From Botryllus schlosseri (taxonomy: Eukaryota), in NCBI GenBank assembly GCA_051294905.1, contig CM119381.1:21514001-21578000 (forward strand): a DNA stretch of 64,000 nucleotides. The letters are read 5' to 3'. This document shows, piece after piece, positions 8,963 through 56,383 of the stretch. Numbering within the stretch: position 1 is the stretch's first letter; every line of letters starts with the position of its first letter. The position numbers were made by a program, and so were the translations under genes. The notes under the pieces were generated by a model, which was given only the letters and a program-made list of their open reading frames with translations, ran no database searches and had not been told where the DNA came from.

Positions 8963-9038
8963 ATGGCTGTAAACTATTATATTGCTTCACTCTTGTTTAT
9001 ATTCGGATTACTACCGAAAGCGGCCCCTCTTGAAAACC
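8963..9038 (+). CDS. Exon 1: signal peptide
   Basis: [25 protein letters not shown] followed by a strong donor C|gtaagt (phase 1), which matches the phase-1 acceptor at 9993. Confidence 0.8.
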
Positions 9039-21000: not shown

Positions 21001-24000
21001 ACTGTACTGCTGGAATGTAAGAATACTTCGTGAACTCTCAAAGTAAATGTTTTGTTCTGTGACTAAAATCCACCGCGATTTGAGGTTAAAATGTTATGCA
21101 ATGGCGAGAGGTACGAATGGAACTTTCATAGTTCCTGTTCCATGACAATATTTCGACCATTTTTCTTTCTCCACTCATTCGGAACTTGATTGAAATATCC
21201 GAATGCGTGCACTAGGGTTGTTGAATAATAACCTTTTTACCGGATTCCAGGGATTCACTGATTATATTGCTATACGTTGCCTAAAAAAAACGCTGCACAC
21301 CTAATTTGACTCGATACCAACCAGTTAGCCAACGCAGAGCCAATTGAAATTTTTCGAATTAACATAAAAAATAAAGTTGCCTAAAAACATGATGCATAAT
21401 AAGATTGGCTCAATTCCAACCGGTAGAAGCGAAATTATTGCAGTTGAAAGTTGTAAATTTGCAAAAATAACATTGACGGTGGGGAATTCCCAGAAGTATT
21501 ATTGAAAAGGTCAAACATCTTCGCTTCTAAGAGTTGGAATTGCATCAAATTTGTTTTGCATCGTTATCGTGGACAACTCAACAATTTCATGAGTTTTTAT
21601 TTGTTATTTTTTATGTATTTATTTCGGTAGGAATTGAGCAAAGTTTGGTGTACAGCGTTTATTGGCAATTTATTAAGTGAATCCCCGGGTTCCAGAGATG
21701 CAAACATCCAGATTCAAGATTGACACTTTGTTATAACGTACAAGTCTGCAATCATATGTAGCAGGAGCAGATCATCATATTTTAACGAAATGCCGTTACA
21801 ATAATTGCGTTTAGGTCCTATCGCGGATTCGGAGCAATGCGGCGTGTCGGAAATCCCACCAGAGTACAAATGGGTAAGATGTTTCGATTTCAGCCGTTTT
21901 TTATAGGTCAAGTCCATGCATATACATGTCACAGTATAAAATTTATCGCAAGCATACAAAGACGTGACCCCTGCCACTATCCAAATATTGTAATTTAATA
22001 ATAGCGGAATGTTCGCGTCACTCTCTGAGCATTAACAGCTACGTGAACTCGTCTGTCTGCACGGAGGTCACAGGCCCGTAACTTCGTGATAGCCACTGTA
22101 TTGTGTATGTTCCAGTCACGGGATATGTTTAACTCAGTCGTACCACGATTCGCTTACCCTACACGTGAAAGAATTTTCTGCTGTCAGCTGGGTGATACAG
22201 TTGAGATATCACTCACGATGACATTGCCGATTTACAATAAGAAAAAATGCGGCGAAAGGGCTGTATCTATATGTATTCTGTTTTGAAATAGCATTACCGA
22301 GTACAATTATATATTATCTGGACACCCGTAAAGCACTGAAGCGGATCTAGAGTTTTATGCCTAACAAAATCGAAACATTGAAGTAAAATAATATACATTT
22401 TACGCATGCGTCAGATAGGTAATTGCGATTTCGTTACGACCGGATATGCCATATAATTTACTATACCCGAGGATTATGCCATGCATGTTGGGACCCTAGG
22501 TGATTTATGTGATATTCGATATGTCAACGAGTGAAACTATTCGTACACTGCAAGCGCAAAAAGGGGGCTCTCGAAGAAACCCAAAAATTACTTAGTAAAT
22601 AAACATAAATTATTGAGTATATTTTGGTAGACTTATTAAACGCGCGTAAAATGGCAATGGAAACCGACACACTCTACTATAACTGGACATTTACACCACT
22701 CCTGCGTATTTGCATTATAGAATTGTACTGACCCTCATCTTGCCTGAAGCAATGTCTACATGGTTTTGAGTAGTTCTACGTATAGTTTTGCTATTGGTAA
22801 CTAGGGTTGCATTTTAAACAAATGGTGTGTTAAAACACTTTAATTAAAACAGTGTTTCAGAAAAATGTCTCTAAAAGATTTGAGTAAATACTTTCGAAAT
22901 AATATGTAGTATAAGCTTACGGACGATCTGCACCCGATGTAGTCGACTTGTATACGATTGGAATGGTTAGAAACCTCGGGATCGTCGTCGATTAAACAGT
23001 TATATCTCGTAGATATATATCATTGGTACGGAATGGGTGTTCTGATGATGATGACCGTCGACCGTAAACATGCTGCATAGCGATGTAGTCCTGGTTAAAG
23101 ATATTTTTGGACTGTTTATGACAGGGGTCGGAAGCGTCAAAGAAACTATATATTTAACGCATATTTTCAGTTGTCAAGGTCAATACGCTGTGGCGACAGA
23201 ATGATGCGCGACTTCATGGTTAACAAAAAAATAATAAAGAATCAATAGAAAACATGTTTTAAACAAGGGCCGTGTTTAAATATATTTGTTTTAAATTCAT
23301 TTTTGCTTTAAATGCAACTCTAGTGGTAACTGCTGATAATAGAGTGTTAAATAATAATTAGGACATCACCTTAGTTCTGATGCCTTTTCCAGCATATGGA
23401 ACTAGAGTGAAATCACGATACTTTATTATTATCTAGCAATTACTACATTAAAAACTATTTAATATTCAGCCATTAGGCCTACTCACCAATCGCAAGTGAC
23501 ATCGCGCATACTTGTCAGAGCCGATTATATAAATTTGCTTTCGAGTCAGGAAATCCGATATTGCGACTGAGTATTAAGTATCCTCGACCTGTTTCGAATG
23601 GGTCTCAACAGGCAGCACCCCCGCGTTCATATTTGCCGAACTCTCTTTCTACAACGCAAAACCGCGCAACACTGGATTACTCGTTGGGAGAGACAATTCA
23701 CTCTGCTTCATTGACCTTCATTCTTTTAGCATTCGCGTATCGTTGGCGGGTATGACGCCGTGAAAGGATCCTGGCCATGGCAGGGACGTTTTGGCGTACT
23801 ATATCGGGGACGAGAGAGCAATATTTGTGGAGCTGTATTGATTTATGACCAATGGGTGTTAACAGCAGCACATTGTATATTGACTGGGTGAGCGTGATCT
23901 ATGTTTTGTGGTTCTTGGTCTGACCGCTGTCTAAAATTTAAATATTCGGTTTGCTACTTAAAGTGATATGGATCGCAGTGCCACAACTATCAATAATGCC

Positions 24001-27000
24001 GCGTCATTGAATCGTATTAGGGAATCCTCTGGAATATTGTGAGACAGATATCCCTATTTACGCAAGGCGTCTAACATGTACTTGGCCGCCCGTTTAGCAT
24101 TTCCGGTGTTATATCGCCCAGACCCTGCATGGTAAACTTGCATGTCATAGAACAGTGGTGGGAAAACTACCGCACGTGGGCCGCGTGCGGCCCGCGACAC
24201 CGTTTTGTGCGGCCCGCGAAAGGCTCAAGAATCGCATTTAAAATATTGCAAAAATGCACAGTAAAAATCTAATTTCTGCAGGGACTCGATTAAACTTTTT
24301 CGCAATATATTTCACCATGATAATTATAATCAATGGTTTGTTTTAAATAAAAATATATATAATTTCATCACTTCGGATTTTTTGTGCGCAACTTGGATTT
24401 TCTGTGCGCAGAGACCGTTTCAGCACAGCGCATTTGCGCACGTGCGCAGCTTAGAGAGAACATTGCTTGAGAGTAGAGCAAACACGGGTTTTCGTTACCT
24501 TTACCGCACCATATGTATGCCGCGGCCAGTCTTATCGGTATATTAAACGTACCGAGGTGTTATATATTTTACACATTCAAGAATTAAAATTTACTCGTGT
24601 TTACTTTAGACTCACACGCCGGGGATCGCATGAATAGTCAAACTGGATTGTTTATGTAGTAATGTTGGTATTAATACTAATCGCGGGTTCGTGATACGAA
24701 AACAATGTATTAAACTGAATTCGACAGACACCTTTCGAATATTCGATAAAGATCAGCTCATAATTTTCTCGATTATACAATCAAGAAAATGACTTAATGC
24801 GGTGCCTTGGTTCCCAATCTCTTTCGTCTCATTGAGCCCTTCAGATGTCAGATATTCTTATTCGGTAAAATTTTCCTCAAGAAAATAGCACCCTCTACCC
24901 GGGTCTCGTAAATGGTCATTTTCCCGTGCATGCACCTGTTGTCCGAATGATAAGGCGACCGACGCCACTTTTAAGCTCTACAACACAGACGGCTAGACTA
25001 TTTATACAAGATTGTTAATTCAAATAATACGGTGTGGATCAGAGACGTAACTGCAACACTCCAAACCACTGTGTGTTGGGACTCTCGAAGCAATCCCAAA
25101 ATTATTTAGTAAATAAACATAAATTAGCGCGATTTAATGCCCCTGCGTGTCTTGAATTTAATATGGGTACCCCCAAGAATTCCAATTTAATTTATTAAAA
25201 ATAGGGATTTCGGCGCCGGCCACCATAGCGTCACGACACACCAACACATGCGTAGTTTCGAGCAAAATGAGAGTCCATGAAGTGTGCTGCCAGAACATCG
25301 GCAGCGAGAAAATTTTGTCTAAAAATGACCGACACGTGTAGGACAGGTGTAGGCCATCTATAGATGTATCATATGTCCACTTGTCCATTGTTGATATAGC
25401 CGCCTACATGACCGGTGCCAAATAGTCCTGTCATGGCAATGTAAGAAAATGATGCACCCCGTGACGAAATGTAAAGTTGAATCGCTTGCGTTTCATGAAA
25501 GTGGTTTTTGTTTTAATTTAGTCTGGTACATGTGAGCGATTCAGGAGCCGGGAGATAAAACAACAACGACATAAAACAGAGTAATTGATAACGGCGGTAT
25601 CCGTAGATGTATAATTAATTGGTTTTTCACCATTACCGTGAGCTAAACTTGGGATGACACCACCTCTCTCAGACCTACCGCTGCATCTGATCTCGTGGGC
25701 TGAAAGGGGATATAACATATATATGCTATTACTATGCTATTATTATAGACGAAATTCGACGACTAGAGGGGGAGGGCGGCGCGCTGTTTCACTCCGGGTG
25801 TGGTTGGTTTGACTTTTGCGTGTTCAAGCTGTATGTTTGTCAATTCGACAAACACCTGTTGAATCACCAAGTTCATTATATATAAGAGAAACCGAATTCG
25901 AATAGCCGAGAATACATCCGATATCATCATTTTTTATGCAGTATTGAGCAGTATTACATCAAGTTCGGCGCCTATGACTTCACTGACGTCGACGAGGAAG
26001 ATGAACAGAAGGTGTTGGTTCAGCGAGTTTTCGTTCATCCTAAATACGAGTGAGTCATTGAGACAACAATTCGACACCGTGCCAGCACAGTAAAGTAGCC
26101 TACTATTATGCTTTACCTTACCTTGTTAATTCGCAAAGTCGAACCCAGTTAACCAGAGAATTCTGCTTTTCGTAGCTGGATCGACAATATTGGTTTCACC
26201 TACGGTTACGATATCGCTGTGCTTTACTTGGAGACTCCGGTGAATTTCACAAAATGGGTGAAGCCGATTTGCCTACCCAAGTACGAAGTTATGGATGGTG
26301 ACACGATCGTGATGACCGGATGGGGAAGAACTCGTGAGATTGCCCAAATATCGAAACTAGTGTATTCAGTTATTCTGGTCGATGACGAATTTAATGCGCC
26401 GAGAGGCGGTCACGGATTAATCACGTACGGGCGCGCAACTTCTCCGGTCGGCGGGCCGGATATGATAAAATGAAGTAGGCCCTACTTAGCGGGTCGGATT
26501 ACACAATCGCGTATTTATCCACCTACACAAGGTATAAATCGTATTTAATATAAACTTAAAGTTTAAAACACAGATACCAAAAACAGTATTTAAGGAATTT
26601 ATTAACGGTAGCTGTTGAAGTCAATCAGACATCTGTGGTCGGGCAGAGTTGTCAACAAGTCCTTTGAACTCTGGCTTCATGTCGTATGTAGAAACCCTTA
26701 GTAAAGTCTGCACGTGAACATCAGTTATATTGGAACGCAGCATTGTCTCGTTAATGTGCATGGTCTAAAATATATGTACAATCGAACACACAGCAAGTAG
26801 TTTCATTTCCCTCTTTCTCAGGTTGGCAGACTCGGATTCATCCTGTAACGCATAAAATTTGTCAATAATTTCAGAATATAATTTCACTTTCAGGGTAGAA
26901 ACTTTCTGCGGACCGGACAAAACCCCTTCGCGGGCTGGATCCGACCCGCGGCAGTATGTTGCCCGTCCCTGAGCTACATCTAAATTCCTGTTACCTGTAG

Positions 27001-30000
27001 CCTAATTCAATCATCCTTTACAGTTATGCATGTTGCTCACAAACATTTATGATGCCCGCGTCATTCCGGACAGCGAACTCTATGTCACTCCCTCGCATCA
27101 TATGTCTACGAACAAGACTGTGTGAATCTATGCCTACGCCTGCGGTAGCAACATACTATGCATATTGAATTATTCATAGTTGTGAATAAGTGTTAATGAT
27201 CGGGAAATATCGAAGTAAAGGCAAATATGAACTTCAAACTCCGTCGTTGCCAAGACTTTCGTAAAACATTTTGGAATGAAACTCTGAGATAGTGGGGATG
27301 GTTCGAGCACTCTGTTCACGTTCACATTAGATACGTGAACGGAACGTTACAATGATGATTCAGAACAGTGGTCCATTTAATAATATTAGAAGAGCTTCTT
27401 GGAGGTACAGAATTTCAATAAACAATTGAATAGTATATTCACGTTGATATAAACCCGAATATCTTCGGCTGACACTCGTTAGGGGTAATCGTCAGCAACT
27501 ATTAGAGAATTGGAAAGAACATTGTATATCAACAATCGTGCCACAAAATATGACGTCACCAACATGAAATTTCAAGCGAGAGAGCGTTCAATGTACTATT
27601 TTCAGGTGGTACACGAACTCCTTTTGTTGACAGAGCTTGGGTTGGTGTATTTTGATAAAAGTCGACTCCAAGGCACACAAATGGAAGTGTGAACGGCCCC
27701 TCCCAACGACGCGAAATCTGTCGCCTCGATAATTATTCGCACAAATCGGATTATCTAATAGATGTATGCTGATGGCACAATTAATGATCTTTGATCTGTC
27801 AGCATCAAGGTTAGGTGGATGAGTTAAGGGTGAGCTTCTCACCGAGCCTGATGCACGTGTTTGATAAATCTGGGGACATCATGCTGGTTTATGCGTTCCT
27901 GCAGACGCTTTGACGTTCGTAGCCACAATCACAGTGGCACTTATATTCGTACACTACATTACTTGGTTGAAGTGCAGGGAGCACGTCTTTGCGTGTCGAA
28001 GGGAGCAGTTGTGCAGTCGTAAAAATCACATTGGTTTCGCTCCTAGCCACCTCATCCGCGTCAGCGGTGTCTTACAAAAGCTTCGAGGTGGGTCGTGCTA
28101 TGAGTCGGCAGTTACGGAAAATAAGAATAATATCGGCCTGGTGTAAATGACCATAGTAGTCGACAAACACCATGAATACCACAAAACAAACAAACACATC
28201 TGTTTTTACTGTATCGTAACACTTACTGACCGCAGAAATCAATTGTTTTTCAAAGCGGGTGGAAATGGGACCAATCCAAGGTAGATGGATATAAACATCT
28301 TTGGTTGTTCGTTCTTAGGCTCTGTTGACTTTTCTTCGTTGAATTGCGTTAATTTTCTCTCTATGCCGCGGTTGATGACGTGTTCAGGGTAACCGTTATC
28401 AAGTAAGATTTTGCGGATGTTGTCAGGTTCTAAACTCAGTTTGTTACCCGAACATACCATCAACGCTATATGCACGAGGGATATCGTATCATCCACACAC
28501 CGATGCTAGATTTTTACTGATACCAAACCTTGCACTAATCAGAAGATATCTCTGAATGAAGTGTGACTGGTGAAGGCGTGTAGCTGTGCCATTGGGTTTT
28601 GATTTAGCTTGTGGTCAGGTACGTTTGAGCCAAACTCAAGTGGGGTAATAGAGGGATTAGACAACAAAATCGCTGAAATGTCTACATGCTCCGTGCTAAC
28701 GTTGTACATGATAATGTTTACCAAAATATTCAACTATGATTTTTTTCGCGCCCGGCGCGATTTACCTCGAGCCAATAATGATTGCTCTGTTTATCGTCCA
28801 AATTCCAAGTTCCAGAAGTATTGCAATAGCCATAAAATATCATAGACGACAGTTGTTGTTGTTTGTTTCGATGAATTGTTATATTCAATTTCTGTATATG
28901 AATGCTAAAATGAGGGATATTAGGTATGTCTAAAGCCGTCCAAGGCCACTTCTGTAAACCGGAAAAGAGGATTCTTGCAGACTAGCGTCAAACGCATGGA
29001 TGAATAGTGAATACCCGTAAGATGAGGATATATCTTACGTTCTGCTGGTCATTGACCTTTATATATCGTCTTTGTAAGGAGTAAATTTCGACATGCATAA
29101 TTTCACTAAAATCAGAATAACGGCTCCTAGTCAAGTATAAAGTGCATTAAGTCCAATATTACTCAGCGTATTAACCACCCGGAAACTTGCGTATTGCGTG
29201 CTGGAATACATAAAGAGCTATCACATAACGACATATATAATAGTATGTTGTAGTATGTGATATGCATTTTCAGTTTATTTCAATGTATATCACTCGCCAA
29301 TCTGCGTCTATCAATGCTAAAATAACCGATATATCATCTATACAAGTCTAAGTGCAATTTGTGCATGCTTTCGAGTTAGCTGGGTGGTGAGATCCAGAGG
29401 TAGGCGAGCTACTTTAAAATTTCCTTTATATGTAGCCTCTGTAGTTTGAAACGCGGCGCCGACGTAAAAAAAAGTTGTGAACCACTGTTCTAAACATTGA
29501 TCCTGATCTGAGAAATATCAAATTCTTCCAGAACACATAGCACGCTTGATCAATATTCCTATCATATTCCAATCAGTCGCAGCACTAAGGGCATTTAAGA
29601 GGAAATGAAGATGAATATTGTGTCGCCGACATTATACCGATTTATCGATTATACTGAAATATCTTGCCATTTCGCTGCAACCGCAAAGGCTACTAAGATA
29701 CAGAACTGCACAATTGTTACGGGTATTGAATTCTCCTCAATAGTGCAAAAATACTACCTGTGAATCAGAGCCTCTTTTGAGCCGAAAACTTGAATAAGCT
29801 AACGTAGGCTACCGATGCCAGAAGTCATCAACTACACGTGAATTTTCAGGGAACGGGGGACCGATAAGTGCAATCATGCGACAAGTCGTCGCACCAGTGG
29901 TGTCTAGGAAGAGATGCAGTGAGTTGAACCTTATCCAGAACATGTCGCAGTCGATCATATGCACTGGACTTCCCTTCGGTGGAGCAAGCACCTGTCAGGT

Positions 30001-33000
30001 AATTATACTGTCTTTCTACATATAGGCCACTGCATTTGCCTTCATTGTACAATAAATAATGATGGAATAATCGTGACTTCATGGCGTAGAAATGAAATAC
30101 TGTAATAGTGCATTGGGGCAATCACAATCAAATTTCGGACGGACATTTGTTGAGTTAGATGTAGGCCAATTATATAAGTAAGACCTGTGTAATTGTGTAT
30201 AATCCTTGGGTAATCGAAGACATAATATCCAATGCAAGATCAATTATCGGGTAAGGAAATCGCCTGCATGAACTGTATTAAACAGGGTGATTCTGGGGGG
30301 CCAGTGGCAGCGTTGCAGAATGGAACCTGGGTAGTCGCGGGACTCACATCGTTCGGGTCGTTTTGTGGCGAATCAACCATTCCAGGATCGTACGCAAACG
30401 TGCATTATCTACTACCGTTCGTCCATGATGGTAAGACGTCTTCTCCTGCCGTACATGATATTTCTAATATGCGTATTGCATGATGTTCATTAGCAGTCAT
30501 CCTATCTCCAAGAGTGTATTCGTGGCAATTGTTACACAAATAATGGTATCATATGCAATGTTCCCTCTAAGCTGCGCACGTGCGCAAATGCGCAGTGCTG
30601 AAACGGTCTCTGCGCACAGAAAATCTAGGCTGCGCACAAAAAATCCGAAGTGATGACTTTTTTTAAAATCGTTGCGCACTCTTGTCCAAGGCACCGCGCA
30701 GGCGCTCAGACTCGGGAAAAATGAGAGGGAACATTGCCAGCGGTAAATAGTGCTATCGCTGAAGTCTGAAACCGAGGTAGGCCCACAAGTGCGGTCCGAA
30801 AAGGCAAATATTGCGCTCCGCGAAGCAATGAGAATTTGCAATCGTTTGCGACTCACGAAAGAGATTTTTCTTTTACTATGGTATCGTACGCGTGAACGAT
30901 GCTGATATCATATAAATAGCGCAATCCTTTGTGGGAATGGCGAAATAACATGGTTTAACAAAGTTATAAATAACAGTGGGCCAGCTTGAAGTTAACTGCG
31001 AGAAACCTACGAATAGTCTTCTCCGCGTGTCATGAATATTGTGTAAGATTTACTGTACAATTACATGCATCGAATTTTCGAAGTCATCACTTCCATCAGG
31101 CGAATCTGATCACGTATGGTGATATAGGATAATATGCAGAATATGCAAGTACAAGCACCAATATTGTTGAAAAAATCCATCCCTTTGCAAACGTTGATCG
31201 GGAAATGCAGCAACTATATGCACTGTAGGGCGTTGCATTAGATCAGCTTCTCAGCAGCACTAATTTGCGATTTTATTCGATTCGTTTGAACGGGTATCTT
31301 CTGTCGATAAGGTCATACGCTGATCTTGTTCTTGCTTCAATCAGACTTGAATATTCGTATCATTATATCTGACTGTATGTCTTGATAGTAATGAATGCAT
31401 TGCCGGTATTAAGACGTCACATCAGTGTTTCAACGCGATAGGCCTACATCGATCGCATGTATTGATTTCAAGTGCGTTCTCGTGCGTACTGTATGTCTGT
31501 CTTCTAGTAATCCATAGTATGTCACCATATCGTCGCAGTGGAATCAAAGTGACTTATGTCCAGATTTCAATATCTTTTGGCATAGCAGATAGGAGGTCAC
31601 GAAATAGCATGAAGTCATTATACCAACGGGTACGCCCGAAGGTGTTTAATTATATTTAGGGGTCCTACCTTTTCCAACACATCTCACTCGATCAGCTTTA
31701 CCTGTAAACGTGATTACGTGAGCAGAGACAGGATTAAAATTGATAGCAATATATGCATTTCTCGATGATATTGACCGATTTGATCATGAATTATAGATAA
31801 TTTTCGCGCTTCGCGCGTTTAGTTGGAACGCCCACTAAACGAAGACCAGACACAGATGATTAGTAGCGGGGGAAAGCGTGCAGCATGAGGGGGGTCGGTT
31901 TATCACCCTATGGGGGCCTGGTTGCGCACTGTTGTCCAAGGGCCTGCGCAGTGAGTTGGCGTATTTGCGCAGACTCGTGAAAAATTAGAGGGAACATTGA
32001 TCATATGGTATTCGATTTCAATCAACAATCAACACGCTTGTCCCGTGCGACCGCACATCAGCTTTTCGATAGAACGGAACTGGAGTAGCCGTTGCGTGTA
32101 ATGACTAACTGTCGAGCATTTGTAAATGTATGTTATAGTCTCGAAACAGTAAATCGCACTCCCCCATTGCGTGTATTGCAGATAAAGATCATCCAATCTA
32201 GCCTATAACATATCGTTAAAAATACGATGGCAATATACTCTAAATGAGAGATTGCATTGCTGTCTGTTAAACTCAAGAGCGGCGAGACGGCTTGTTAACT
32301 ATAGGGTTGCTTTCGAAAGACACTCATGTGCTTATGCCAAAGTGTCCTAGTGCCGAGGGTAGTGGTTAAATCCATACAGCTGCAACACCTATAGATTGTA
32401 GGTTCGAGGCCAGGCACTCTTTAGCGCTTAGTGCATGGGTTTTAAATTGAGTTATGAAAACGTATGACGTCAGACTTGCAATGCTTTGCCTATCGATTGT
32501 ATTTGTAATATAGATATAACTATAATTGTAAACAGGAGTGGAATTTTAATGTAGTACGTGAATTAACTAGAACTAGACTATTGGCCATCTCGAAATTGAG
32601 CTCTGGTGATTGCTCGGGTCGGTATTATCATTTGGTCAGCAACAGAGTTATTAATGGGCTGGATGAAATTGTCTGTCCTGCCGGCCGTGTGTTTGACACC
32701 CCTGCTATACTGTTTTTCCGTACAGATATGTGATTGCTCTTTGTAGGCAGAAACGAAACAACACTTTTAAGCCAATTTATGCCCCAAAGAACACTGGTCT
32801 AGGACCCACCATGTGATCGATGCAACTTCTGGTGGGCTTATTATATGCATCTGGTTGTTAAATTTTGTGAGTGAATTCTGTCAATCATTTCGACATGACA
32901 GGGGACGTAATTGCACATTGCTAAGTCATATTCATGTCATGCGGATAAGGCTATTTATGAGGCGAAATGCCGGTCCGCACCAGCAGGCTGCACATCTGGT

Positions 33001-36000
33001 GGTTTCCAACCTATGGTCGCAACTCCATTTTCAATTTGAAAACATTCCGTGGCCCACCTGACTCTACTAAACGAATGGTCAGCACAGGGTTGTAACCAAG
33101 TCATAAAACTCCGAGTCACAAGTCAAACTCATTTTTATAGTTTTGACTCGAGTCAAGTCGAGTCATTTTCAATTCACCACCGAGTCAAGTCCGAGTCCAA
33201 GTCTTCTAGCAGATATTCAAGTCCGAGTCATGATATTATGACTCGAGTCCGAGTCCAAGTCATTGTGTTGACTGCTCAGTTTCAAGTTAAAGTCCAACTT
33301 TTATACCTCTGTTTGGTGATATCGATGGTTCGCATTTATAGAATACTAGTTTTCCCCACTTTTAACAGTTTCTTGTCGCATTTTCAAGTACCAGTACCAA
33401 TAGACGAAATCCCTATAGGCTGGTTACTTTACTTGTTCTTCGAAATTACAATGAAATGTCGGTCTTGGCCGTCTGACTCTCGAGTCATATGACTTGGTTC
33501 GAGTCATTCGCAATGACTCGAGTCCAAGTCGAGTCAATACACAGATTGACTCGAGTCGAGTCATTTTCGTATTTTGAGAAAATGACTCGAGTCAAGTCGA
33601 GTCATCAGAAAATCGTGACTCGAGTTTGACTCGAGTCATTACAACCCTGGGTCAGCACCGTTGTCCAGACAACTCATGGCCTATGTTCGACGCTGATTAA
33701 GTTCAACATCCTCGCGATCGCCAGAAAAGGGCCAACACCCCAAGCTTGAGAACCACCATCGTTGACTAAAGCATCCAAACTGTCTTACCGACACTAGGAT
33801 AACATGGTTATCTTGAAATTGCGATTACAATTAGTCTGACTACAGTAAATGATAGGTATTTTAATTTATTTATTTATTATTGGAGTTTTTGCGACGCTAA
33901 TTCGCGCGCAGCGAGAAGATTAATTTCAAGTAGCCTAAATCGTCCCAAAACTAAGATATTGTTTATGTTGATTAACGAAAAAATTTCTGGTATTGCGCGC
34001 CAGCGCCTTTAACCAATGTATGCTGTGCTTGTGCGTGATCAGTATGTACTGGTATGAGTGGTTTCACCGGCGTATTACTTGATGAAATATCAGTACTTTA
34101 CGAATCGCTACATTATCCATTATATTTTAGTGATGACGAACGGCTTGACAGAAGTCACTGTAGGTGAGTGCTTTTTATGTCTGTTTTTCGTGAGTTCTGC
34201 GTCTATTTGATGATTTTTTGATGCAGTGAGCAGTGTGATAAGAGACAAAACAAGTGGCGTAATTTCATCTCCAAACTACGGCGTCGGAAAATACCCAGGA
34301 GGCGTTCATTTGCGTTGGTACATCATGGTAGAGCCCCAGCAGGTATATGTTGTAACAGGGTTGTAACCAAGTCACAAGGCTTCGAGTCACAAGTCAATCT
34401 CACTTTTATATTTTTGACTCGAGTCAAGTCGAGTCATTTTCAATTCCCACCGAGTCAAGTCCGAGTCCAAGTCAGCGAACAGAGGGTCGAGTCCGAGTCA
34501 TTGTGTTGACTGCTCAGTTTCCAGTTAAAGTCTTCCTAAACCCACTTTTTTAACTGTGTTTGGTGATATTGAATGGTTCGCATAATATATCAATTTTCCT
34601 CACTTTTAGCATTTTCAAGCACCAGTACCAACAAACGAAATCCCAATAGTGTGTTGGCTCCGAAATTACAATGAAATGTCGGTCTTGGCCGTCTGAATCT
34701 CGAGTCAATGACTTGCTTCGAGTCATGCGCAATGACTCGAGTCCAAGTCGAGTCAATACACAGATTGACTCGAGTCGAGTCGAGTCATTTCCGTATTTTG
34801 AGAAAATGACTCGAGTCGAGTCGAGTCATCCGAAAATCGTGACTCGAGTCCGACTCGAGTCGAGTCATGACTCGAGTCATTACAACCCTGTGTTGTAATA
34901 AGTGATATTCGGACAGTGACAACGGGCTCACATCCTATTCAACCAAAAGCCCTTCAATAACAACGGTTTGAAAATATATGATAGCAAAGGCGGCAAATCA
35001 GAATTAATCCAACTATTAACCAGAATGTAGGGTACTTACAATACCCCGACATATTACGAAACACGATAGTGCATTCCGTACGAATGTATTCTGACCGAGG
35101 GACTGAGGTCGACTCCGGAATCCCTTCTCAAATGTTGAAGGTTTGTTCAGGCTCCTCGCCGCCTCCTGATCCTTGTAAAAATCCAATAGATGTGGCCCAA
35201 GTCGGTAGCAACGGAATCATAATAAAGTACAATAAGATACTTGTATTTAAGGATTAACGATTCCAACCAAAAAAGTATTACAATTCTAACATGTGCACAT
35301 TGTGCACCAATGCCTACTTTAATATACGCTAGTTCGACATTTTGTCAAAATTATGTGTTTTAATGTAGAAAATGTCAATTTTCAGGCCAGAATTTTACGT
35401 TTTTTAAATAAAACATAATCTCCCGAGAGATGACCAAATGTCGTGTCAAATAACTTTGAAGCACTTCGATTTTGATTCGGTACAGAACATCGTAATAGCC
35501 AGCTAGTTCGATTACCGAAATCAGTCGAATATTATAAAATAACCTCTCGAGAAATACTATTTCGTGATTTTATACAACCAGCATCTTTTCGAGAAATTTC
35601 GTATTAATGACAGCAGGTTCAATTTGCGTGTCATATTGGGTTTTATACTTACAGTTGATTCAAATCAGATTTAATGAGGAATTCAGAATCGAGCAATCTG
35701 TATTCAACACTCCTTGTGCAGGGGACTATCTACTGATTTATGATGGAAGCTCGACTCTATCCCGTAAGGTACCGTCTCTAACGAATGAAGTATAGAGTAT
35801 AAACTGTGTCTGAACTGTCTATCTTGATGTGTTTTTGCTGCTCAGTACGGAGACAAACGTATTTGTGGTTACCGGCCGCCACTTGATTTAGAAAGCCAGA
35901 GCAATGCAGTGATTATAGAATTTCATTCCGATAATAGTTTCGAGGATGCGGGATTTTCACTATCGTGGCAAGCTGTAGGTAATCGATTCTATATCATTGT

Positions 36001-39000
36001 ACTGAAGTATATCTCTGATATACTTTTTGCTCAATATACATTACAGACGCTTGCGCATCGAATGAGCTGCGTTGTTGGAACCGAACTTGTTTGCCCGAAT
36101 CAATGAAATGCGATGGAGTTCAAAGTTGTCCGAGTAACAATGATGAATTGGAATGCGGTTGGTATCTTATTCTAGTCCCGATTAAAGCGATACGTGTCAA
36201 CATCGATCATGTACGAACAGCTCTAGGTACGCCAGGGTCAGCGGAGTGTGGGAAATCAGAAATTGCTCCTGAGTTCCCGTTCGTAAGTCTTTCATTTCTA
36301 ATTGGCGCCTGACGCATTATGGCTCGGCTGCACCCTTGTTCCATAATATGAGCATTGGGCTAAGCCGATTTCGTGATGAGTTCTAATCAACAATATTCGA
36401 TGACAATCTCACAGTCGGTTGTTCGATTAGAAGAAGAACTAAGATGTCGAAGCTGCTGCAGCCAGGGCCGTAACTGCCACGGCTCAATCCACCCAATTTT
36501 GGGAGCTCGATAGCGGCCCAAACTTATTTGGTTACTAAATATATAATATATAGAGTATTATTTGGTTGATGACCCTATGGTGGCCCAAGACCAACGCTTC
36601 TTGTGGAGTGACGGGGTGGGGGGCTGACGAAGTGCCACTACTGTTTCGGCCCTGGCTGTAGCTATGCTCTTCGCCGACGTAAAATAGAACACGAAATAGA
36701 CATAGCAGTCTACATTATTTTTGTAATATATAATTTCTCACTAACAATCACGAAGCCATCCACCTCCGTGGCAGCTATCCGAGAATTCGCTGGAGTTTTA
36801 ACGGGGCATTGGCGATCTACAAGTACGCGCAATTCATTTACGTGAATTATAATACACCACTGCATACATGGAAACGTCGTCTGTTTATATTTCGCGGTGA
36901 GCGCGACAAAAAATCTCGAGATTTGACAGATTTTGTTGTATGTTAATTTGCGATGAAAACTCAGAGAGATGTAGAACAATTGTTCTACTTTAATCATATG
37001 TCCTTACTGCACCATCTACTATACTGCGGCTGCATGCCTCATTCTTACGCAATGTACGTTGTGTCCCAGACTCCCCTGATTATAGGGGGACATAACGCGG
37101 TGAAAGGTTCGTGGCCGTGGCAAGTTGGACTGTACCGTAAAAATGGAGACTCTTACAGCTTCCTCTGTGGAGCCAGTTTGTTGTCGGAGTATTGGGTTTT
37201 AACGGCAGCCCACTGCAGTTTTAGGTAAGTATCTGACCCTTACCCTCCTAATTTCAGCCGATTTGGAGTAAACTAACCTAGAATGTGTATCTTTATACAG
37301 TGTTGCGATCAAATCACTACCTTCGAGTCACGAGTCATTTCGATTCGAGTCATTGCACATTTTGACGCGAGTCAAGTCAAGTCACTCGATTTTTGGAGGT
37401 GACTCGATTCAAGTCGAGTCAAGTCACGAGTCAAGTCACAATTCAAGTCAAGTTGCCTTTTCGAAGTATGAGGCATGATTACGTCATTGCATTTTGCTAG
37501 CTGTCTGAAATACAGATTGAGTGGTCATTGATTCCGAACCGAAGAACGAATATAGAGTTAAACATACACGCAAGAAGGCGATGTATCGCTCACATATATA
37601 CGTAGAACTGTTGAACTACGTAAGTAATTGTACATCCTCAGTTTATAGTTACAAGCCAAAATAGTGGTTAGAGAAACGAATAGCTAAGATGCAATACATT
37701 ACCCACTTACAAATTGATATGATAAAATTCGAGCCTGCACCAATGATTGAGGACTATATAAAGTATACACTATATTCGAATTCAATTTCAATAAAGCAAG
37801 AGGTTAAGGTGAGAACAGAAATAGACATTTTTCTATTTTATTACTTTACTACTAGTTTACGACAACGTAAGTTGTAAGTTTCGATCACTTCGTTTGCAGT
37901 CACTTTATTTGTCAAAGAATAATGGAGGCTCAGTGAAACGCACGGTCATTGAATGATTGGTCGCTCTCACGGGTTACACCAGCGTTTCGCGAACAACATA
38001 TGCAAGATACAGCGATTTTTATCGACACCGATTACTTGATGACTCGAATTTGACTCGTGAATTTTGCTCCAAGTCACGAGTCAATCCACATTTCTGATAC
38101 GCCCAGTCAAGTCAAGTCAAGTCATTTTAGCAAAGTGACTCGAGTCAAGTCATGACTCGAGTCATCGTAATACTGGTATCTTACGTGTACAACTGTACAG
38201 TGTACATATAGCAGTGTTGGGATCAAGTCAATACCTTCGACTCACAAGTCATCTCGAGTCGTTGAACATTTTGACTCGAGTCAATTCAAGTCAATCAATT
38301 TTCGAAGATGACTCTAGTCAAGTCAAGTCAATCGATTTTTCTAGGTGACTTGAGTGTCAAGTGAAGTCAGTCACGGAACAAGCCACAATTCGAATCACCA
38401 GTCAACTCAAATGGAGTTTTCGAAGTACGGGGCATGATTCAAAGTCATTGCCCTTTGCTAGCTGTTTGAAAAACAGATTGAGTGGCCCGTCATTCTGAAT
38501 CGAGGAATGAATGTTGGTTGAGTTATATGTACTCGCAAAAAGGCATTGTATCGATTACGCATATGTAGAACTGATAATTATAAAATGTTATTTTATAGCC
38601 TTAGTCTATAATTGCCAGTCATAATAGAGGATAGAATGCGAAACCTCAAAAAGTTTACTTAAATTTACGTGATGTAATACGATACCCATCTACACATCTA
38701 TGAGATACAACTGAAACTCGGGCGATTGGTGGCCGCGCTGAGAGCAGACGTGAGCGCAATGAACTATGGGACGCTGTCCGGGAAAATCTCTCTATTCGCC
38801 AAAGTCAGATATATGAATATATGGTAATGTTGTTCGCCGTCGTCCAAGGCGCATTCAATCGAAAATCGTCACCAACGCTCTACGCAGATATGTTTATTAT
38901 TTTACAACGTTGAGTATTTATAACCAAACAATCAATCCAACAACGTATAGACTAATTATTCAATGACATCTATTAAGCGCAAGTTATGAGCACACATTTG

Positions 39001-42000
39001 AACGCATACAAAGACGAGGACGAGGATGTTTTAAGCGCATATTGAACCAAAATGAAGTACGATGACTTGGAAGAGAAATTTACCCGCTGTCAATTCCCCC
39101 ATTCGCCGTTTGTTCTTCTCCATCCAACATATCGATGCGTATGTTGACGGGTTACGTAACCAGTCGGTTTCTTATACAGCTCAGACTTACAGGTCGCCAT
39201 TGGTGACTACGACAAGAATACGGAAAGTATTTCAAGACACGAAAAGAGAATCAACGTGACAGCAGCTTTGCAGCACCCAGGCTACGGAGGGTGAGGACTG
39301 ATGATATGAATACTATTATGATGTGCATATACGTATTTAGCATCAGTAATAGTTTATTATATGTATTTTTAAATATTCTCGCCAATCCGCTCAGAGATGA
39401 GGATAGGTTTTGTCCACCAAGCGGTCTTAACCTTTTGCTTAGAAAGCGTATAACAGGGGTTCTCAAACCGGTACGCGTACCCTCAGTGGTACGTGAAAAA
39501 ATTTTCGGGGGTGATTGAGTTACTTCATTTTTCTGGAGCCGTGACAATTATAATAAATGACAATAACGTTTATGTGACAAGAGATTAAAAAGGTTAAGCT
39601 TACCAAACCCAGCGTTTACTAAGCCCTAAATCACCGTACTGTTATATTGCCGTGCAGCGTTATTCGGCACATCTACATTAACTGTAGGGAATTTATGTTT
39701 CTCTACTGTCGCGGTGATAAGAGTTACTGCGTAACCTACTGTAACTGTTACTGACACCAGAACCGGTGTCTACTGCCTATTTCAATCTTCAGAGTCTGCC
39801 TATGTAAAATGATAAGTAGGCATAGGGACGGATTTAATTGGGGTTGCGTTTAAAACAAAAAACAATTTAAAACAAACATCTTTTAAACATGGTACTTGTT
39901 TAAAACTTGCTTTTAGCCGTGACGTCACGAATCCTTACTTGTGACGTCACGTTGGATTGACATTGACAATTGAAAGTATATATGATATATATCGACATGC
40001 TATAACTGTTGAACCGACGACGATTTGGAGGGTCCCAGCCGCTCCACATCGTATACGTCGACTACATTGGGTGCAAATCGTTCACAGGCTTCGTATGTTT
40101 TTAGAAAGTATTTTACACAACAGCTTCTTGGAAGTACATAACTTCAATATACAATTGTATAGTATATTCTTATTGAAATGAACCCGAATATTTTCGGCTG
40201 ACACTCGTCAGGGGTAATCGTCAGCAACTAGTAGAGAATTCAAAAGAACATCGTATATCAACAATCGTAGCACAACATATGGCGTCACCAACATGAAATG
40301 TTGAATACGAGAGCGTTCAATGTACTATTTTTAGATGATACACGAACTCTTTTTGTTGACACAGCCTTGGCTGGTGTATTTTGATGAAAGTCGACTCCAA
40401 GGCACACAAGTGAAAGTGTGAACGACCCTTAGGGGTGTGTGGAGAGTCTTTCATTCACCCCTGCACTTACAGTTGTGACTTGTGAGCATGGTTTTCAAGC
40501 ATTTGTGCAATTGTGCATGTTGAAGAAGAGATTTCGTGCCATAGTTTTCGTTGAATATAATTCACGTGTGTACCTTTCCAAGAGATTTCCAAGAATATAT
40601 TTACTCGTGGAGCAGGGTCAAGCTCATCCATTACATTGAGATGATGCTTCAAGACGTATTCTGTCGTGTTTGTCTTTAAATTGCGTGTGTTTCATGCAAC
40701 ATTATTTTTAGGGGGTACGCCATGCATGCAGATAATTCAAAAGGGTAGGAAGTTGAATAAGTTTGAGAATCCCTGGTGCGCAGCGTCTACATGTATTAGG
40801 AAATTTAAATGCGGAGGCCAGACCGTTATACGACCACTCCATCACGGAATTCTACCCCATTCATTTACAAATCTGATCGCAAATTAAAATAACATCGCGA
40901 TTATTTTTCGTTGGGCGCATAAAGATCTGAACGCAACGACATAGCATTTCTGAGACTAGAAGAACCAGTTGACCTCACTTCAAAATGGTATAAACCGGTA
41001 TGTTTACCACCGAAAGGGGAGATGATACCTCCAGTGGGTGCAACATGCATCATTACAGGCTGGGGTATGACTGGTAAGTATATAATAATCTACAGCAGAA
41101 TTGCTATCAACTCATATGAAATATGATAATCCTAAATCCCGGTACACATGCTAGCCTAGTGGTACTTTCGAATGCTATAATGTGGTGGATTATATGTGTC
41201 TTTCAATTATAGAATCTCTCACTCTTAAATGTCCGTTTTTCATCTTCGCGGTCGCCAATTGATAGTCATATATTCAGTGCTGGCGAACTAAAATTCATAA
41301 TGTCTTGATAAAATCCAAACAAAATATAATTATCAAAGTATGCATATCATTATCAGGCCCAAAGTTCTATTGTCTATATATGTTAGAGACTATGTTAGGT
41401 CAGTAACGAAGGACTTCTACTTTTTGGAAGTACTGAAGTAGTTTTCCCCTACTTCTGGTACTTACTCAAGTAGATCTGATTTTCTCTACTTCTACTTCTA
41501 CTTCGTAATTATTTGTGATTTACTTACTTACTTTTCTCTATTTTCAGTTTGTCAAGTAGAAGTAGTTTAATCCCCCAATACGAAAGGTAGCCTGAGGAAT
41601 CTTGGGGCTGTTTTCACGTAGTACCAACATTTAATATTCATTAAAGTCAAATAAAGCTCAAAAATTTTGTTGCGCTTCGCGCACAGTAGTTATGGAGCAG
41701 AGGTCTCAAACTCAAATGTGCTCGCGGGCCAATTTCCTACTTTTTGCTGGCGCCGCGGGCCGCAGCGCCAATAATAGGGGAATACCAAGGTCAAATTAAA
41801 TCAGCGTTAGATTTATCTTCGAATATTGTAACAGATCTATAACAACTTGAATATAATGATTACTGTGCTATTGGAATAGAAATGTCCAATCGCCGAGAAA
41901 TTCCTTTGTGTTACAGCTGTGAAGCGTAGGCTACGACTACTCGTCACAATAATTGACAATGATAACGTGGATAAAGATAGTCTACCCATTATGACACAGG

Positions 42001-45000
42001 ATGTAACCAACTATAAATCAAGAGGACAACATCATGCCAATGGTTGCCATACCGACCTACTGAGATATCTAAAGGACCTACGACACGCGAGCTACGACCT
42101 TTCGGTATTTTACTATTTTCCATACCAGTTTGATAGTTTCTTGCGTCCGTGGTTGTACAAAGTCACGGCGTTCCGCGTCACAATAGTCCTTCTCTATTTG
42201 TATCTTTTCACGCGACTCAACTCGAGTCATTTTTATTTTATCAGCTATTGAGTCCGAATTCGAGTAATTCTACAAAAGGTCGGCCCAAGTACAAATCACA
42301 ATTTTCAGTGCGAATCATCAAGATGTTTAACCATCATAAAGAAGTAACGTCACGTAATGGGTAAATTTCCACTGCGTTGTAACTTTAGAAGTGATGCGAT
42401 AGTGAAGTTTGAGGAGTAGTTTCTGGCTTATGGAGTAGTTTTAGAGCGAATTTTTAGTTCTCAAATTAAAAAAATGGTACTTAAATATTGACGAATACTT
42501 CGAAATCCAAAATGCCGTCGCGGGCCGCACAAAATGGTCTCGAGGGCCGCATGCGGCCCGCGGGCCGTGTGTTTGAGACCTCTGTTATGGAGTGACGAAT
42601 CTGTTTTCACGAAAGTATCAGTGAATATCATTTAGGTATCGGATTGCTTGGTTCCGCTCAAAACGCATTGTCGCCCATATCAAATATTTAATCACAATAA
42701 ATACGGCCCACCATAACGTTTGAAACTACAGTTTCGTAATCTAGCAATTACCTATCATATCGTAATCTAGCAGCCCATTAAGTGTCTTGCTAATCTGAAA
42801 AATCCAGCGTTTTTTAACGTTATACCTGTTTTTAGCAGATCACCTTTAAAGCTTTATGGACAAAAAACATAAAATATATTTTTCTGCTTTTTAGAAGAGG
42901 TGTATGTATTTCCCTTTCAATTGTGAGTATCATACTTTGAGTTCTGATTACTTTCAGTTCTTTTGTCTGCAGAACATACACTTTGAAGCATGAAAGCAAG
43001 TGTAGAAATGCCTCTATTTTCCGAAAATAGACCTACACTAAATATAACTTTTACGATCCACAATATTTGTTATTAACGTATACTAATCGCGTAAAGTGAT
43101 AAAACCCTATCCTATACAACTTCTACGTATTGCTCTTCACCTAAACAGGGGGCCTTATAATAGCGGGTAGGGTGCTATGCCATGATATTCTCTAAAACGG
43201 GATCTTCTAGTAAATATAGGGTTAGTATCCCATTTTCATGTCAATACTATAATCCCATGATGCGAAAAAATGTTTATTCTGTCCAAAATTTATACCTCCT
43301 GGGATGCATCAATACGATTCAAGCTCTATGCACCTTCCGCATAGCTCAATTCGCAGCTTTTGATACTTTTGACAGTCCATGCGAACGAATTAGGACTGTT
43401 TTCACAACTACTACTTACTTACTTGAGTAGATTTAAAGTCAGTCAATTCTACTTCTACTTCAAGTAGTTTTAGGTTGCTTATTGAAGAATTAATTCTACT
43501 CGGACTTGAGTAGATTTTTCGTTGCTACTTGTACTTCTACTTGAGTAGCTTTCTTGACGACTTTGACCACCTCTGGTTGGAGAGATACGAAGCTGTTGGT
43601 CCGCGTAGGTGACAGGTTGGCGCGTAGTAACGGCGGTTCCTTATTGCCACAGGGCCAACCCGGGAATTGAATACGCCAGATATTTTGCAGCAAGTTCAAG
43701 TGAGGGTCTTGAACGACAGTGCATGCCAAACCGGGTTCGAATTTTTCGACAAAGGCGACACCACGCTCATTTGCCTAGGTCACATCGACCGGGACTTGGG
43801 TGCCTGTTTTGTAAGTATATACCGTAGGTAATATGTTATCCATCAGGATTAGGTTCTGAATATGAAATATCCAGGGAGACTCCGGCGGACCGCTGCAATG
43901 CCAGCATGGTGGAACGTGGGTGCAATATGGAATCGCATCGTTTATTACTGGGACATGTGGATTCCGTTCATTCTATGAAAGAGTGTCCCTTCATATTGAT
44001 ATGATAGAAGAAGGTACGCATATATAGATATTCTCTTACATGGTAGAGTTGAAAGACACTATAACAATGATACGATACGAATCTCTAGATGGTACAGACT
44101 ACAAACCTTAGATTCTGAACATATTCTGATTCGCAGGAACACGATTAAAGATTTTTATATAAAGTTCGCTTCGAACACGAACATTAGCATGAATATATGA
44201 CATCATGTTACGTAGTAATGTTAATTCAAACGCAAATCGCTGCTGCATTCCTATATATACAGTATACACTAGTGGTCGGGAACCTATGGCTCGCAAGCCA
44301 TATATGGCTTTTTGGGCATAATATATGGCTCTTTGCGAAATTTTTAGTTTTTTTGCCTGAATAATCAATATTGCAGCAACTTGGTAATACATCTTAAGCT
44401 TGAGCAGTATAATTATTTTGCGGGAGTGTAAACATGTCTTTGAGAGGTTGATACAGTGGCGTATTCAGGGTTAGGGGCTCGGACCCCCTTTTCAAAATCC
44501 TCAAATTTAAGTTGCTGCCGCCCCGGCGACCAATATCACTCGCAAATTCGATGTGCCCGGTACAAAATCTTGAATTGCACGATGCATTCACTGATTAAAG
44601 AGACTAGTAGACGTGGCGGCGCCTGTAGCTCAATGCAGTTATCAAATATACATTGTCTTTCTGATCTCCGGCGGGAAATAAACCGCGGCGGAAGTGACAT
44701 TCACAATTACAAATTCAAACTACAAACAACGCCACAGCTATTCACGTTCTTGATTGATAACGTAGCTTTGTATAGTCGCTGTTAAAATGTAGGCGTGTTG
44801 CGCAAATACTGCCGCCAAATACTTGAGAATTGAATCGGAACCAGCGCGACAATTGCCTTCGAATAATATCAGTACATACATTCTATGATATTTACGATGT
44901 ATTGCGCTATCACAATGGCTTAACCTTCGTTTCGAACATTATTTTCCAACAATAAAGAGGAAATTTGCGTGATTTTTGTAGTAAAAATCTTCAAAATCTA

Positions 45001-55700: not shown

Positions 55701-56383
55701 TTGGACGAAGGATGTCGAATCCGCGAATATACGTAACCGTTGGGGATTCGTAACTGATCAATAACTAATTAATACCTCAAATAACAACATGCAACACCAT
55801 AGCACTAGGCAGAAGTTTATTGCGAATTTATTAAATATAATTCCGATGGATTATATAATCTGGCGCGTAGCCGGGAGAGAAATGTCCTTCTAGCCCACCA
55901 AATTTTCCGTCTGTTCATTGCGAAGTCATCTGTACTCACTTCGTGGCAATGGGATCTTTGACGTCAGGTTAGTTGTTGAAAAATCTCGCCCCTCCCGAAC
56001 TGGCTATTCTTATGAATATATTTGTTCATTTGCCGCTGCACTTGTAAAATATACTAATTTTAACGACTGCCATTAAGTGCGAACCACTTTGTATCGTAGC
56101 ATCTGTATTGCTATCGTGATCGTCTCAATTTCTTTGTGCTGCGTTCAATGATGAAAGGTATTAAATACTGAGTTTTCTATGCATGCACTTGCACCGCCTC
56201 CACACATGTCATCAGATACTCGTTATAAAACGCCGTACGTTTCTGCTTCACATTGAATATATACCAACGACAGACAGACAGACAGAAGTTTGTTTTTAAA
56301 TGCAAGAAAGTATTGTGGTGAAATTGTGGCCAGCGTAGCGATACGACCATCAGGTCATGAAGGGAGCTGGTCACCTTATATAC

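Follow-up and report, generated by a model that had tools for sequence, protein, structure and literature searches.

An ascidian family of tandem CUB-LDLa polyproteases with a conserved non-basic activation site and a possible activation relay within one chain

The DNA described here is a 64,000-nucleotide window of the Botryllus schlosseri genome, an animal sequence with a G+C content of about 40% that lies at C11:21514001-21578000 in an assembly of 496 Mb. Its + strand carries open segments that match the Trypsin, CUB and LDL-receptor class A (LDLa) profiles, and these segments belong to one polyprotease gene, called W below, which extends from 8963 to 55700 (positions are those of the window). 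A preliminary description of the region 23730-44013 had proposed that a protease cascade is encoded within a single polypeptide; this span is only the middle of the gene. Mapping with the window's own pieces added CUB exons near 10, 13 and 19 kb and a third CUB-LDLa-protease module at 46.8-52.7 kb. The gene model consists of 39 exons, all with GT-AG introns, and runs from ATG to TGA over 4695 nucleotides (1564 amino acids) with zero internal stops. It encodes, in order, a signal-peptide-like N-terminus, three CUB domains, three CUB-LDLa-linker-protease modules, a Ser/Thr stalk and a hydrophobic tail. The intron positions and phases are identical across all three modules, and the protein is collinear from end to end with the Styela clava protein P0151 (44% identity over 1564 positions). 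W is a member of a tandem array of about 10 CUB-LDLa-protease polyprotease genes, all on the + strand, that occupies about 540 kb at C11:21.11-21.65 Mb. The downstream paralogues B and C and the upstream paralogues U1 and U2 are used for comparison below.

The three protease domains are numbered D1, D2 and D3 from the N- to the C-terminus, and their residues at 189, 190, 216, 226 and other positions were numbered from an alignment of 31 protease domains. Seven of the eight protease exons of D1 and D2 match Pfam PF00089 (Trypsin) at the expected profile positions, with E = 1.9e-15 to 8.5e-4; one of the seven, exon 29855-29998, scores 19.6 bits, slightly under the 20.6 cutoff. Exon 43652-43810, taken alone, gives no PF00089 match. 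Whole homologue proteins give three Trypsin-profile matches each.

D1 opens with CAT TCG CGT↓ATC GTT GGC GGG, or HSR↓IVGG (the arrow marks the activation cut), and its P1 Arg lies at 23736-23738. The catalytic triad is intact (H57 at 23871-23873, D102 at 26210-26212, S195 at 30292-30294), and the pocket contains S189 (29987-29989), T190, G216 (TSFGSFC, 30355-30357) and G226 (IPGSY, 30385-30387). The motif GGASTCQ at the end of exon 29850-29998 meets GDSGGP at the start of exon 30286-30430 at a phase-0 GT-AG intron. D2 opens with ACT CCC CTG↓ATT ATA GGG GGA, or TPL↓IIGG, with the P1 Leu at 37076-37078. Its triad is also intact (H57 at 37211-37213, D102 at 40938-40940, S195 at 43881-43883), and its pocket contains G189 (LGACF/GDSGGP, 43799-43801), A190, I216 (ASFITGTC, 43944-43946) and S226 (FRSFY, 43968-43970), the last assigned from the 31-domain alignment across a 220s loop that is shorter than usual. 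Both domains retain His57, Asp102, Ser195, Asp194 and Cys122, and the zymogen features of D2 (Ile16, Asp194 and the triad) are all present. D3 has Thr57, Gly102 and Arg195, so the triad is absent; HAR↓IVGG, Ile16, Asp194 and Cys122 are retained. After exon joining, every residue that the preliminary description had given for D1 and D2 is found where it was placed, and both domains do lie in one polypeptide, read in a single frame from a single gene.

The identity of the D2 P1 residue hinges on the choice of the splice acceptor. The acceptor used here is supported by the preceding linker exon K2 (36236-36282), which the preliminary description had not listed and whose GTAAGT donor is in phase 0, by the exon and phase pattern that repeats in all three modules, and by the conservation of an acceptor three codons ahead of Ile16 in 17 of the 17 domain copies examined in the cluster.

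D1 shows the pocket pattern of chymotrypsin and elastase-2, with an uncharged residue 189, Gly216 and a small residue 226, and a sequence comparison of Styela D1 with solved proteases puts chymotrypsin C and an elastase chain carrying S189/G216/S226 among its nearest neighbours. Once activated, D1 looks like an enzyme of chymotrypsin/elastase-2-type specificity. Enzymes of this type favour Leu, Met, Phe and Tyr at P1, and Ala-Ala-Pro-Leu and Ala-Ala-Pro-Val are standard substrates of chymotrypsin-like and elastase-like enzymes. D2 retains Ile16, Asp194 and the triad, and its activation would therefore be expected to require cleavage after Leu. Neither the W protein nor any cluster paralogue that was examined has a domain with Asp189, and by S1-pocket logic the Arg cut of D1 and D3 would consequently need another, trypsin-like protease. 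The earlier proposal of an Arg-activated D1 with this type of pocket, a D2 site that calls for a Leu cut, and an external trigger for two active domains neither of which is tryptic, is in keeping with these residues. Trypsin-like pockets are present in Styela, in D2 of P0020 and in D3 of P0153, and reciprocal activation among domains is conceivable in that species. In D3 of W the activation-type rearrangement probably still takes place, and the role of this domain is probably non-catalytic.

When the whole genome was searched with the first D2 exon, 12 D2-type exons were recovered, all of them at C11 21.11-21.65 Mb. The P1 Leu, on whose conservation the preliminary description had made its proposal depend, is present in 12 of the 12, within the motifs VPL, VSL and TPL, a regularity beyond chance. 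In five copies read at the codon level it is encoded by four different codons (CTG, CTT, CTA and CTC), a synonymous turnover that indicates selection on the amino acid. The traced D2-type exons sit downstream of a D1-type exon with a P1 Arg, and the best-matching protease exons read on other chromosomes have Arg or Lys at P1. Three Styela clava homologues have PR, SR and HR at the D1 site and PL, PV and PL at the D2 site; homologues from Clavelina and Phallusia have Arg at all activation sites.

All of the D1 domains examined are Arg-activated and have the triad, with S, N or G at 189 and small residues at 216 and 226. The S1 pocket is uncharged in each of them. The D2 pocket is variable among the paralogues and Styela: residue 189 is G, N or D, residue 216 is I, G or A, and residue 226 is S, T, I or G. 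D2 of Styela P0020 has the trypsin-like combination D189/G216/G226, yet its own activation site is Pro-Val. The bulky residue 216, from which an elastase-like preference of D2 had been deduced, is present in W as I216 and is confined to W, B and C; it is not a trait of the family. Variation of the D2 pocket behind a fixed activation site looks like diversification of the substrate range of an effector.

In a maximum-likelihood tree of the domains, D1, D2 and D3 of the window genome and Styela form three clades with support of 99/97, 100/99 and 94/91, respectively, and the Clavelina domains cluster by species. The three clades place the layout, the non-basic D2 site and the uncharged D1 pocket before the split between the window species and Styela. 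A second protein database query for further stolidobranch homologues gave only three Styela clava proteins, and a full-length protein of the window species was not among the matches in the protein database searches for homologues. The linkers that precede each protease domain (...ECGKxxIAPEFxW/F...) are among the best-conserved parts in all ascidian homologues, and the linker exons may serve as the element by which the activating protease, whichever it is, recognizes its target.

The paralogues fall into two subtypes by their activation sites, HSR/TPL/HAR (W, B and C) and DAR/VPL/NAR (the U type). Exon by exon, B and C share 72-97% identity with W, and the projected 39-exon model gives intact frames in both. 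The overall ratio of nonsynonymous to synonymous substitution (dN/dS) among W, B and C is 0.22-0.25 at a synonymous divergence (dS) of about 0.35. Constraint is strongest in the LDLa-plus-linker parts (dN/dS 0.05-0.18), the dead D3 (50645-52666) is under purifying selection with a dN/dS of 0.18, and D2 has the highest value of the three protease domains (0.24-0.34). The sequence of W thus behaves like that of a gene under selection.

The sequences of U1 and U2 have diverged further, with the predicted domain order unchanged: an active domain with DAR↓IVGG, an active domain with VPL↓IVGG and a dead domain with NAR↓VIGG. U1 has an additional pair, an apparently active TPL↓IVGG domain and a dead NTR↓IVGG domain. 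U1, from about 28.9 to 6.3 kb before the start of the window, appears to contain five protease domains in one gene, in the order active (Arg), active (Pro-Leu), dead (Arg), active (Pro-Leu), dead (Arg); the last exon of its third domain ends only about 185 nucleotides before the following CUB exon. If U1 is one five-domain gene, a single initiator-type domain would serve two Leu-activated domains, and D1 may in that case act on neighbouring molecules. Elsewhere in the array, at C11:21402740-21402970, a Leu-activated copy with TPL↓IVGG reads LTAARC, in which His57 is changed to Arg; it seems to be a D2-type unit turned pseudoprotease.

The coordinates of the gene are collected in Table 1. Confidence in the junctions is lowest for the acceptors at 13240, 36236 and 48877, and the protease domains are unaffected by any of them. 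Joining the LDLa exons straight to the IVGG exons is ruled out by intron phase, and it was this clash that revealed the linker exons. A linker with the pattern ...CG...PxFxW... lies between each LDLa and protease domain of Styela clava P0020, which was reached by a HMMER search with one exon. An initial choice for K1 at 23189-23215 (CGDRMMRDF) was replaced by the phase-compatible and better-matching exon 21815-21873, and a hydrophobic open reading frame at 56077-56148, at first taken for the tail, was dropped since it has no counterpart in the paralogues.

Table 1. Exons and functional sites of the W gene, in positions of the window
Feature	Position	Strand	Basis and remarks
Exon 1: start codon and signal-peptide-like N-terminus, phase-1 GTAAGT donor	8963-9038	+	72-76% identity in B and C
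CUB A	9993-10114, 10378-10470, 10545-10665	+	tblastn with CUB probes, junctions, model
CUB B, without the first Cys pair	13240-13373, 13492-13596, 13656-13782	+	Junctions, model; acceptor 13240 preferred to 13264 by pyrimidine tract
CUB C	18935-19062, 19157-19258, 20024-20156	+	tblastn, junctions, model
LDLa module 1; phase-1 intron splits the sixth Cys codon (T/GT)	20216-20326	+	tblastn, junctions
Linker exon K1, with a Cys that probably tethers the propeptide to D1 Cys122	21815-21873	+	Motif search
Protease D1	23730-23887, 25942-26049, 26176-26333, 29850-29998, 30286-30430	+	Pfam Trypsin, junctions, alignment
D1 activation site Arg↓Ile (CGT↓ATC), HSR↓IVGG	23736-23741	+	Codon reading
CUB D	34227-34342, 35655-35768, 35846-35978	+	tblastn, Pfam, junctions
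LDLa module 2	36047-36157	+	Pfam PF00057, E = 2.3e-8; junctions
Linker exon K2, phase-0 GTAAGT donor; encodes P15-P4 of the D2 activation peptide	36236-36282	+	Motif common to the linkers of ascidian homologues
Alternative acceptor of K2	36227	+	Would add three residues
Protease D2	37070-37224, 39180-39290, 40925-41073, 43653-43810, 43875-44013	+	Pfam, junctions, alignment
D2 activation site Leu↓Ile (CTG↓ATT), FTPL↓IIGG	37076-37081	+	Codon reading
CUB E; acceptor 48877 is the least certain junction	46772-46893, 47561-47662, 48877-49012	+	tblastn, junctions; same exon sizes fit B and C
LDLa module 3	50359-50472	+	tblastn, junctions
Linker exon K3	50534-50586	+	Junctions; 100% identical in paralogue B
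Protease-like D3	50645-50802, 51168-51257, 51321-51478, 52298-52446, 52525-52666	+	tblastn, junctions, alignment
Ser/Thr-rich stalk exon	54699-54824	+	Kept in B and C
Last exon to stop codon: small residues, then a short hydrophobic tail resembling a GPI-anchor signal	55618-55700	+	Similar ends in B, C and all three Styela proteins

The first exon and the last two, which encode the signal, stalk and tail, are all conserved in the neighbouring paralogues. Judged by eye, the W tail, which is conserved in B, C and Styela, resembles a glycosylphosphatidylinositol (GPI) signal, for which one expects small residues at the attachment site, a spacer, a hydrophobic tail and an absence of cytoplasmic residues. 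The gene product is probably a secreted polyprotease with a GPI anchor, and its tail of small residues with a hydrophobic end makes a location at the cell surface plausible. By analogy with chymotrypsinogen and the membrane serine proteases, a disulfide bond between the linker Cys and Cys122 is probably retained after cleavage and would hold the chain in one piece.

A few further features of the locus concern its introns. Very high-copy repeats lie at 30485-30684, 31885-32084, 33085-33684 and 34285-34884, with summed contig depths of thousands to tens of thousands in every one of the four RNA or unclassified sequencing runs consulted. Joints that skip about 1250-1290 bases show two of the blocks, 33.1-33.7 kb and 34.3-34.9 kb, to be copies of one another. 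Repeat-like open frames occur likewise in the introns at 37.3-37.5 and 38.1-38.5 kb. A database fragment of 58 amino acids, P0019, matches the last D1 exon at 79% identity and runs on into sequence like that of the following intron; the public data therefore include genomic DNA, either from a close relative or from a further copy.

The W protein resembles two known groups of polyproteases in design and, as judged from its sequence, belongs to neither. TMPRSS9 (polyserase-1), a vertebrate membrane polyprotease, has three tandem S1 domains in one membrane-bound chain, LDLa and a disulfide tether for each activation site, and the Styela homologues carry the automatic NCBI name 'TMPRSS9-like'. In polyserase-1 the inactive domain is the third. 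Catalytically dead domains are a known component of polyserases (PMC1435904). TMPRSS9 is a type II protein anchored at its N-terminus, and according to Pfam lists it contains SEA and LDLa and lacks CUB, whereas W has a signal peptide, six CUB domains, an LDLa before each protease domain and a C-terminal tail. The signal peptide encoded by exon 1 looks cleavable, which does not fit a type II topology. No SEA match was seen in the ascidian proteins, and the vertebrate TMPRSS9 entries carry PF01390. The ascidian domains form clades of their own in a tree built without vertebrate sequences, and the possession of three tandem S1 domains, some of them dead, is a likeness of design only. To our knowledge, no activation site with Leu has been described for TMPRSS9.

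The ovochymases and oviductins are secreted polyproteases that also mix several S1 and CUB domains. The Xenopus ovochymase precursor, reportedly described by Lindsay et al. in 1999, is said to combine trypsin-like and chymotrypsin-like domains. HrOvochymase, from an ascidian, has two trypsin-like domains and a third without the triad (PMC9265791). The ovochymases differ from W in that the protease comes first and is followed by pairs or triplets of CUB domains, with no LDLa; W has LDLa and a linker before each protease domain, in an order other than that of HrOvochymase. A conserved linker exon, a C-terminal anchor and a matched Leu activation site are not reported for ovochymases.

The best mechanistic analogue of the proposed step from D1 to D2 is found in insects, in the succession of ModSP, HP14 or MSP and cSP48, HP21 or SAE. 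ModSP is an LDLa-bearing, chymoelastase-like initiator for which Leu is the preferred P1 residue; it activates the zymogen downstream of it, and the other cascade members are trypsin-like (PMC10732536). The insect components differ from W in being separate soluble gene products with CCP and clip domains rather than CUB, and they are triggered by pattern-recognition proteins through autoactivation, in contrast to the Arg cut proposed for D1 of W. The likeness to ModSP is one of mechanism; the folds in common are S1 and LDLa. W belongs with Styela clava LOC120348165 and its relatives in an ascidian CUB-LDLa-S1 family, to judge from collinearity, the same Pfam content, the linker ...CG(K)x(E/D)(I/V)xPxFx(W/F)... 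and the D1/D2/D3 orthology clades. This family is unnamed and known only from automatic annotation, and a search for a functional study of it found none. What is new in it, as far as its sequences tell, is a polyprotease with a conserved non-basic internal activation site.

The observed gene structure, residues, conservation and purifying selection suggest a relay in which all the cleavage steps, the disulfide tether and the anchor are predicted. An outside Arg-specific protease would cut HSR↓IVGG and HAR↓IVGG, upon which D1 would become a chymotrypsin/elastase-2-like enzyme with the uncharged S189/G216/G226 pocket. D1 would then cut D2 at FTPL↓IIGG, in the same chain or, more probably, in neighbouring molecules at the membrane, and the active D2 would have a narrower, elastase-like pocket (I216). 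D3 would remain a dead but conserved partner or binding module. Such a specificity relay would convert a tryptic input, through a Leu-specific intermediate, into the action of a variable effector. D1 is taken as the activator because, wherever a Pro-Leu or Pro-Val domain occurs, D1 is the only catalytically intact domain alongside it that is non-tryptic throughout, and because S189, G216 and G/S226 form the type of pocket seen in chymotrypsin/elastase-2-like enzymes. That the step from D1 to D2 operates is the likeliest of the readings considered, though it falls short of being probable. The proposed amplifier on the cell surface survives in part: the surface location is plausible from the GPI-like tail, and within-chain cleavage, being one-to-one, would bring no gain, so that the term would apply only if D1 cuts neighbouring molecules.

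A number of points weigh against the relay. The cleavage of D2 by D1 is itself deduced and not observed. Residues 189, 216 and 226 are by themselves a poor guide to specificity; trypsin with the change D189S does not turn into chymotrypsin, since surface loops also play a part. As seen in the domain tree, the two traits go back to a single ancestor in all cases, which therefore offer no independent replication. A finer covariation of D1 pocket size with Leu or Val at the D2 site was sought in the 31-domain alignment and not found: the single Val case has the most occluded D1 pocket, and other occluded D1 pockets pair with Leu. The first domain of Phallusia P0170 has S189 although every site of this protein has Arg. 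The Leu-activated D2 and D4 of U1 both lie in one apparently five-domain gene, so at least some of the activation would have to take place at long distance or between molecules. In the four sequencing runs, consulted for 30285-36284 only, there were no exon reads and no splice joints; coverage was limited to the high-copy intronic repeats and one unspliced contig over the end of the last D1 exon. A complex prediction for D1 of Styela P0151 with the linker-D2 zymogen, made without controls, gave a score of 0.01 and is evidence neither way.

Some of these points would suit an unrelated activator, such as a secreted elastase- or chymotrypsin-like enzyme or a metalloprotease, with D1 acting elsewhere and its match to the D2 site coincidental. 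D1 has no direct tie to the cut, its pocket and the D2 site both trace to the one ancestral event, and three pocket residues are a weak guide; moreover, animal genomes contain many S1 proteases, further protease exons were found on other chromosomes, and in insect cascades each step is a separate polypeptide (PMC10732536). An unrelated activator is nevertheless considered unlikely, since, among the genes examined, the one feature constantly found together with a Pro-Leu or Pro-Val domain is a D1 upstream in the same gene that is intact, activated at Arg and non-tryptic, and since an outside activator would leave unexplained why D1 never reverts to Asp189. D2 might instead activate itself, the low zymogen activity of one D2 cutting the Leu↓Ile bond of another, which would make D1 dispensable. 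D2 of W, with G189/I216/S226, lacks an acidic S1 residue and could take aliphatic side chains, and the autoactivation site of the ModSP/HP14-type insect proteases lies after Leu. Autoactivation is reported for these modular proteases (PMC10732536). The P1 residue of D2 is conserved, but its pocket is not, and the Ile216 of W, B and C should narrow the pocket against Leu. The variable pocket, trypsin-like in Styela P0020 behind a Pro-Val site, implies that self-activation is not a general rule; it is judged improbable, and the pattern favours a constant upstream activator.

A more radical alternative is that the gene is silent or decaying, or that D2 is an uncleaved binding module whose Leu has no role in activation. 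The lack of exon reads over 30285-36284 would agree with silence, and the many tandem copies include some with dead domains, among them the Leu-type copy in which His57 is replaced by Arg. The 1564-amino-acid frames are intact in three paralogues, however, dN/dS is about 0.24 at a synonymous divergence of 0.35, the Leu codon shows synonymous turnover, and Ile16, Asp194 and the triad are retained, all of which make this explanation very improbable. The wider form of the relay, a cascade in one membrane-anchored chain whose Arg-triggered, Leu-specific D1 has been matched to the Pro-Leu/Pro-Val site of D2 since before the split from Styela, with an effector pocket free to diversify across about 10 tandem paralogues, is offered tentatively, as a doubtful but serious candidate.

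The members of the clotting, complement and insect Toll and melanization cascades are normally separate gene products, and the known polyproteases have not been shown to have their own domains wired in series. Even without a cascade, the family shows an activation site that is both conserved and non-basic, and an extensive tandem expansion in which the effector pocket changes fast. If D1 activates D2, the result would be a compact, genetically linked cascade in which recombination could not separate the enzyme from its substrate, and a simple system for the co-evolution of specificity and activation sites. Were the cascade reading true, the family would consist of surface relays that share a single input logic and differ in their outputs.

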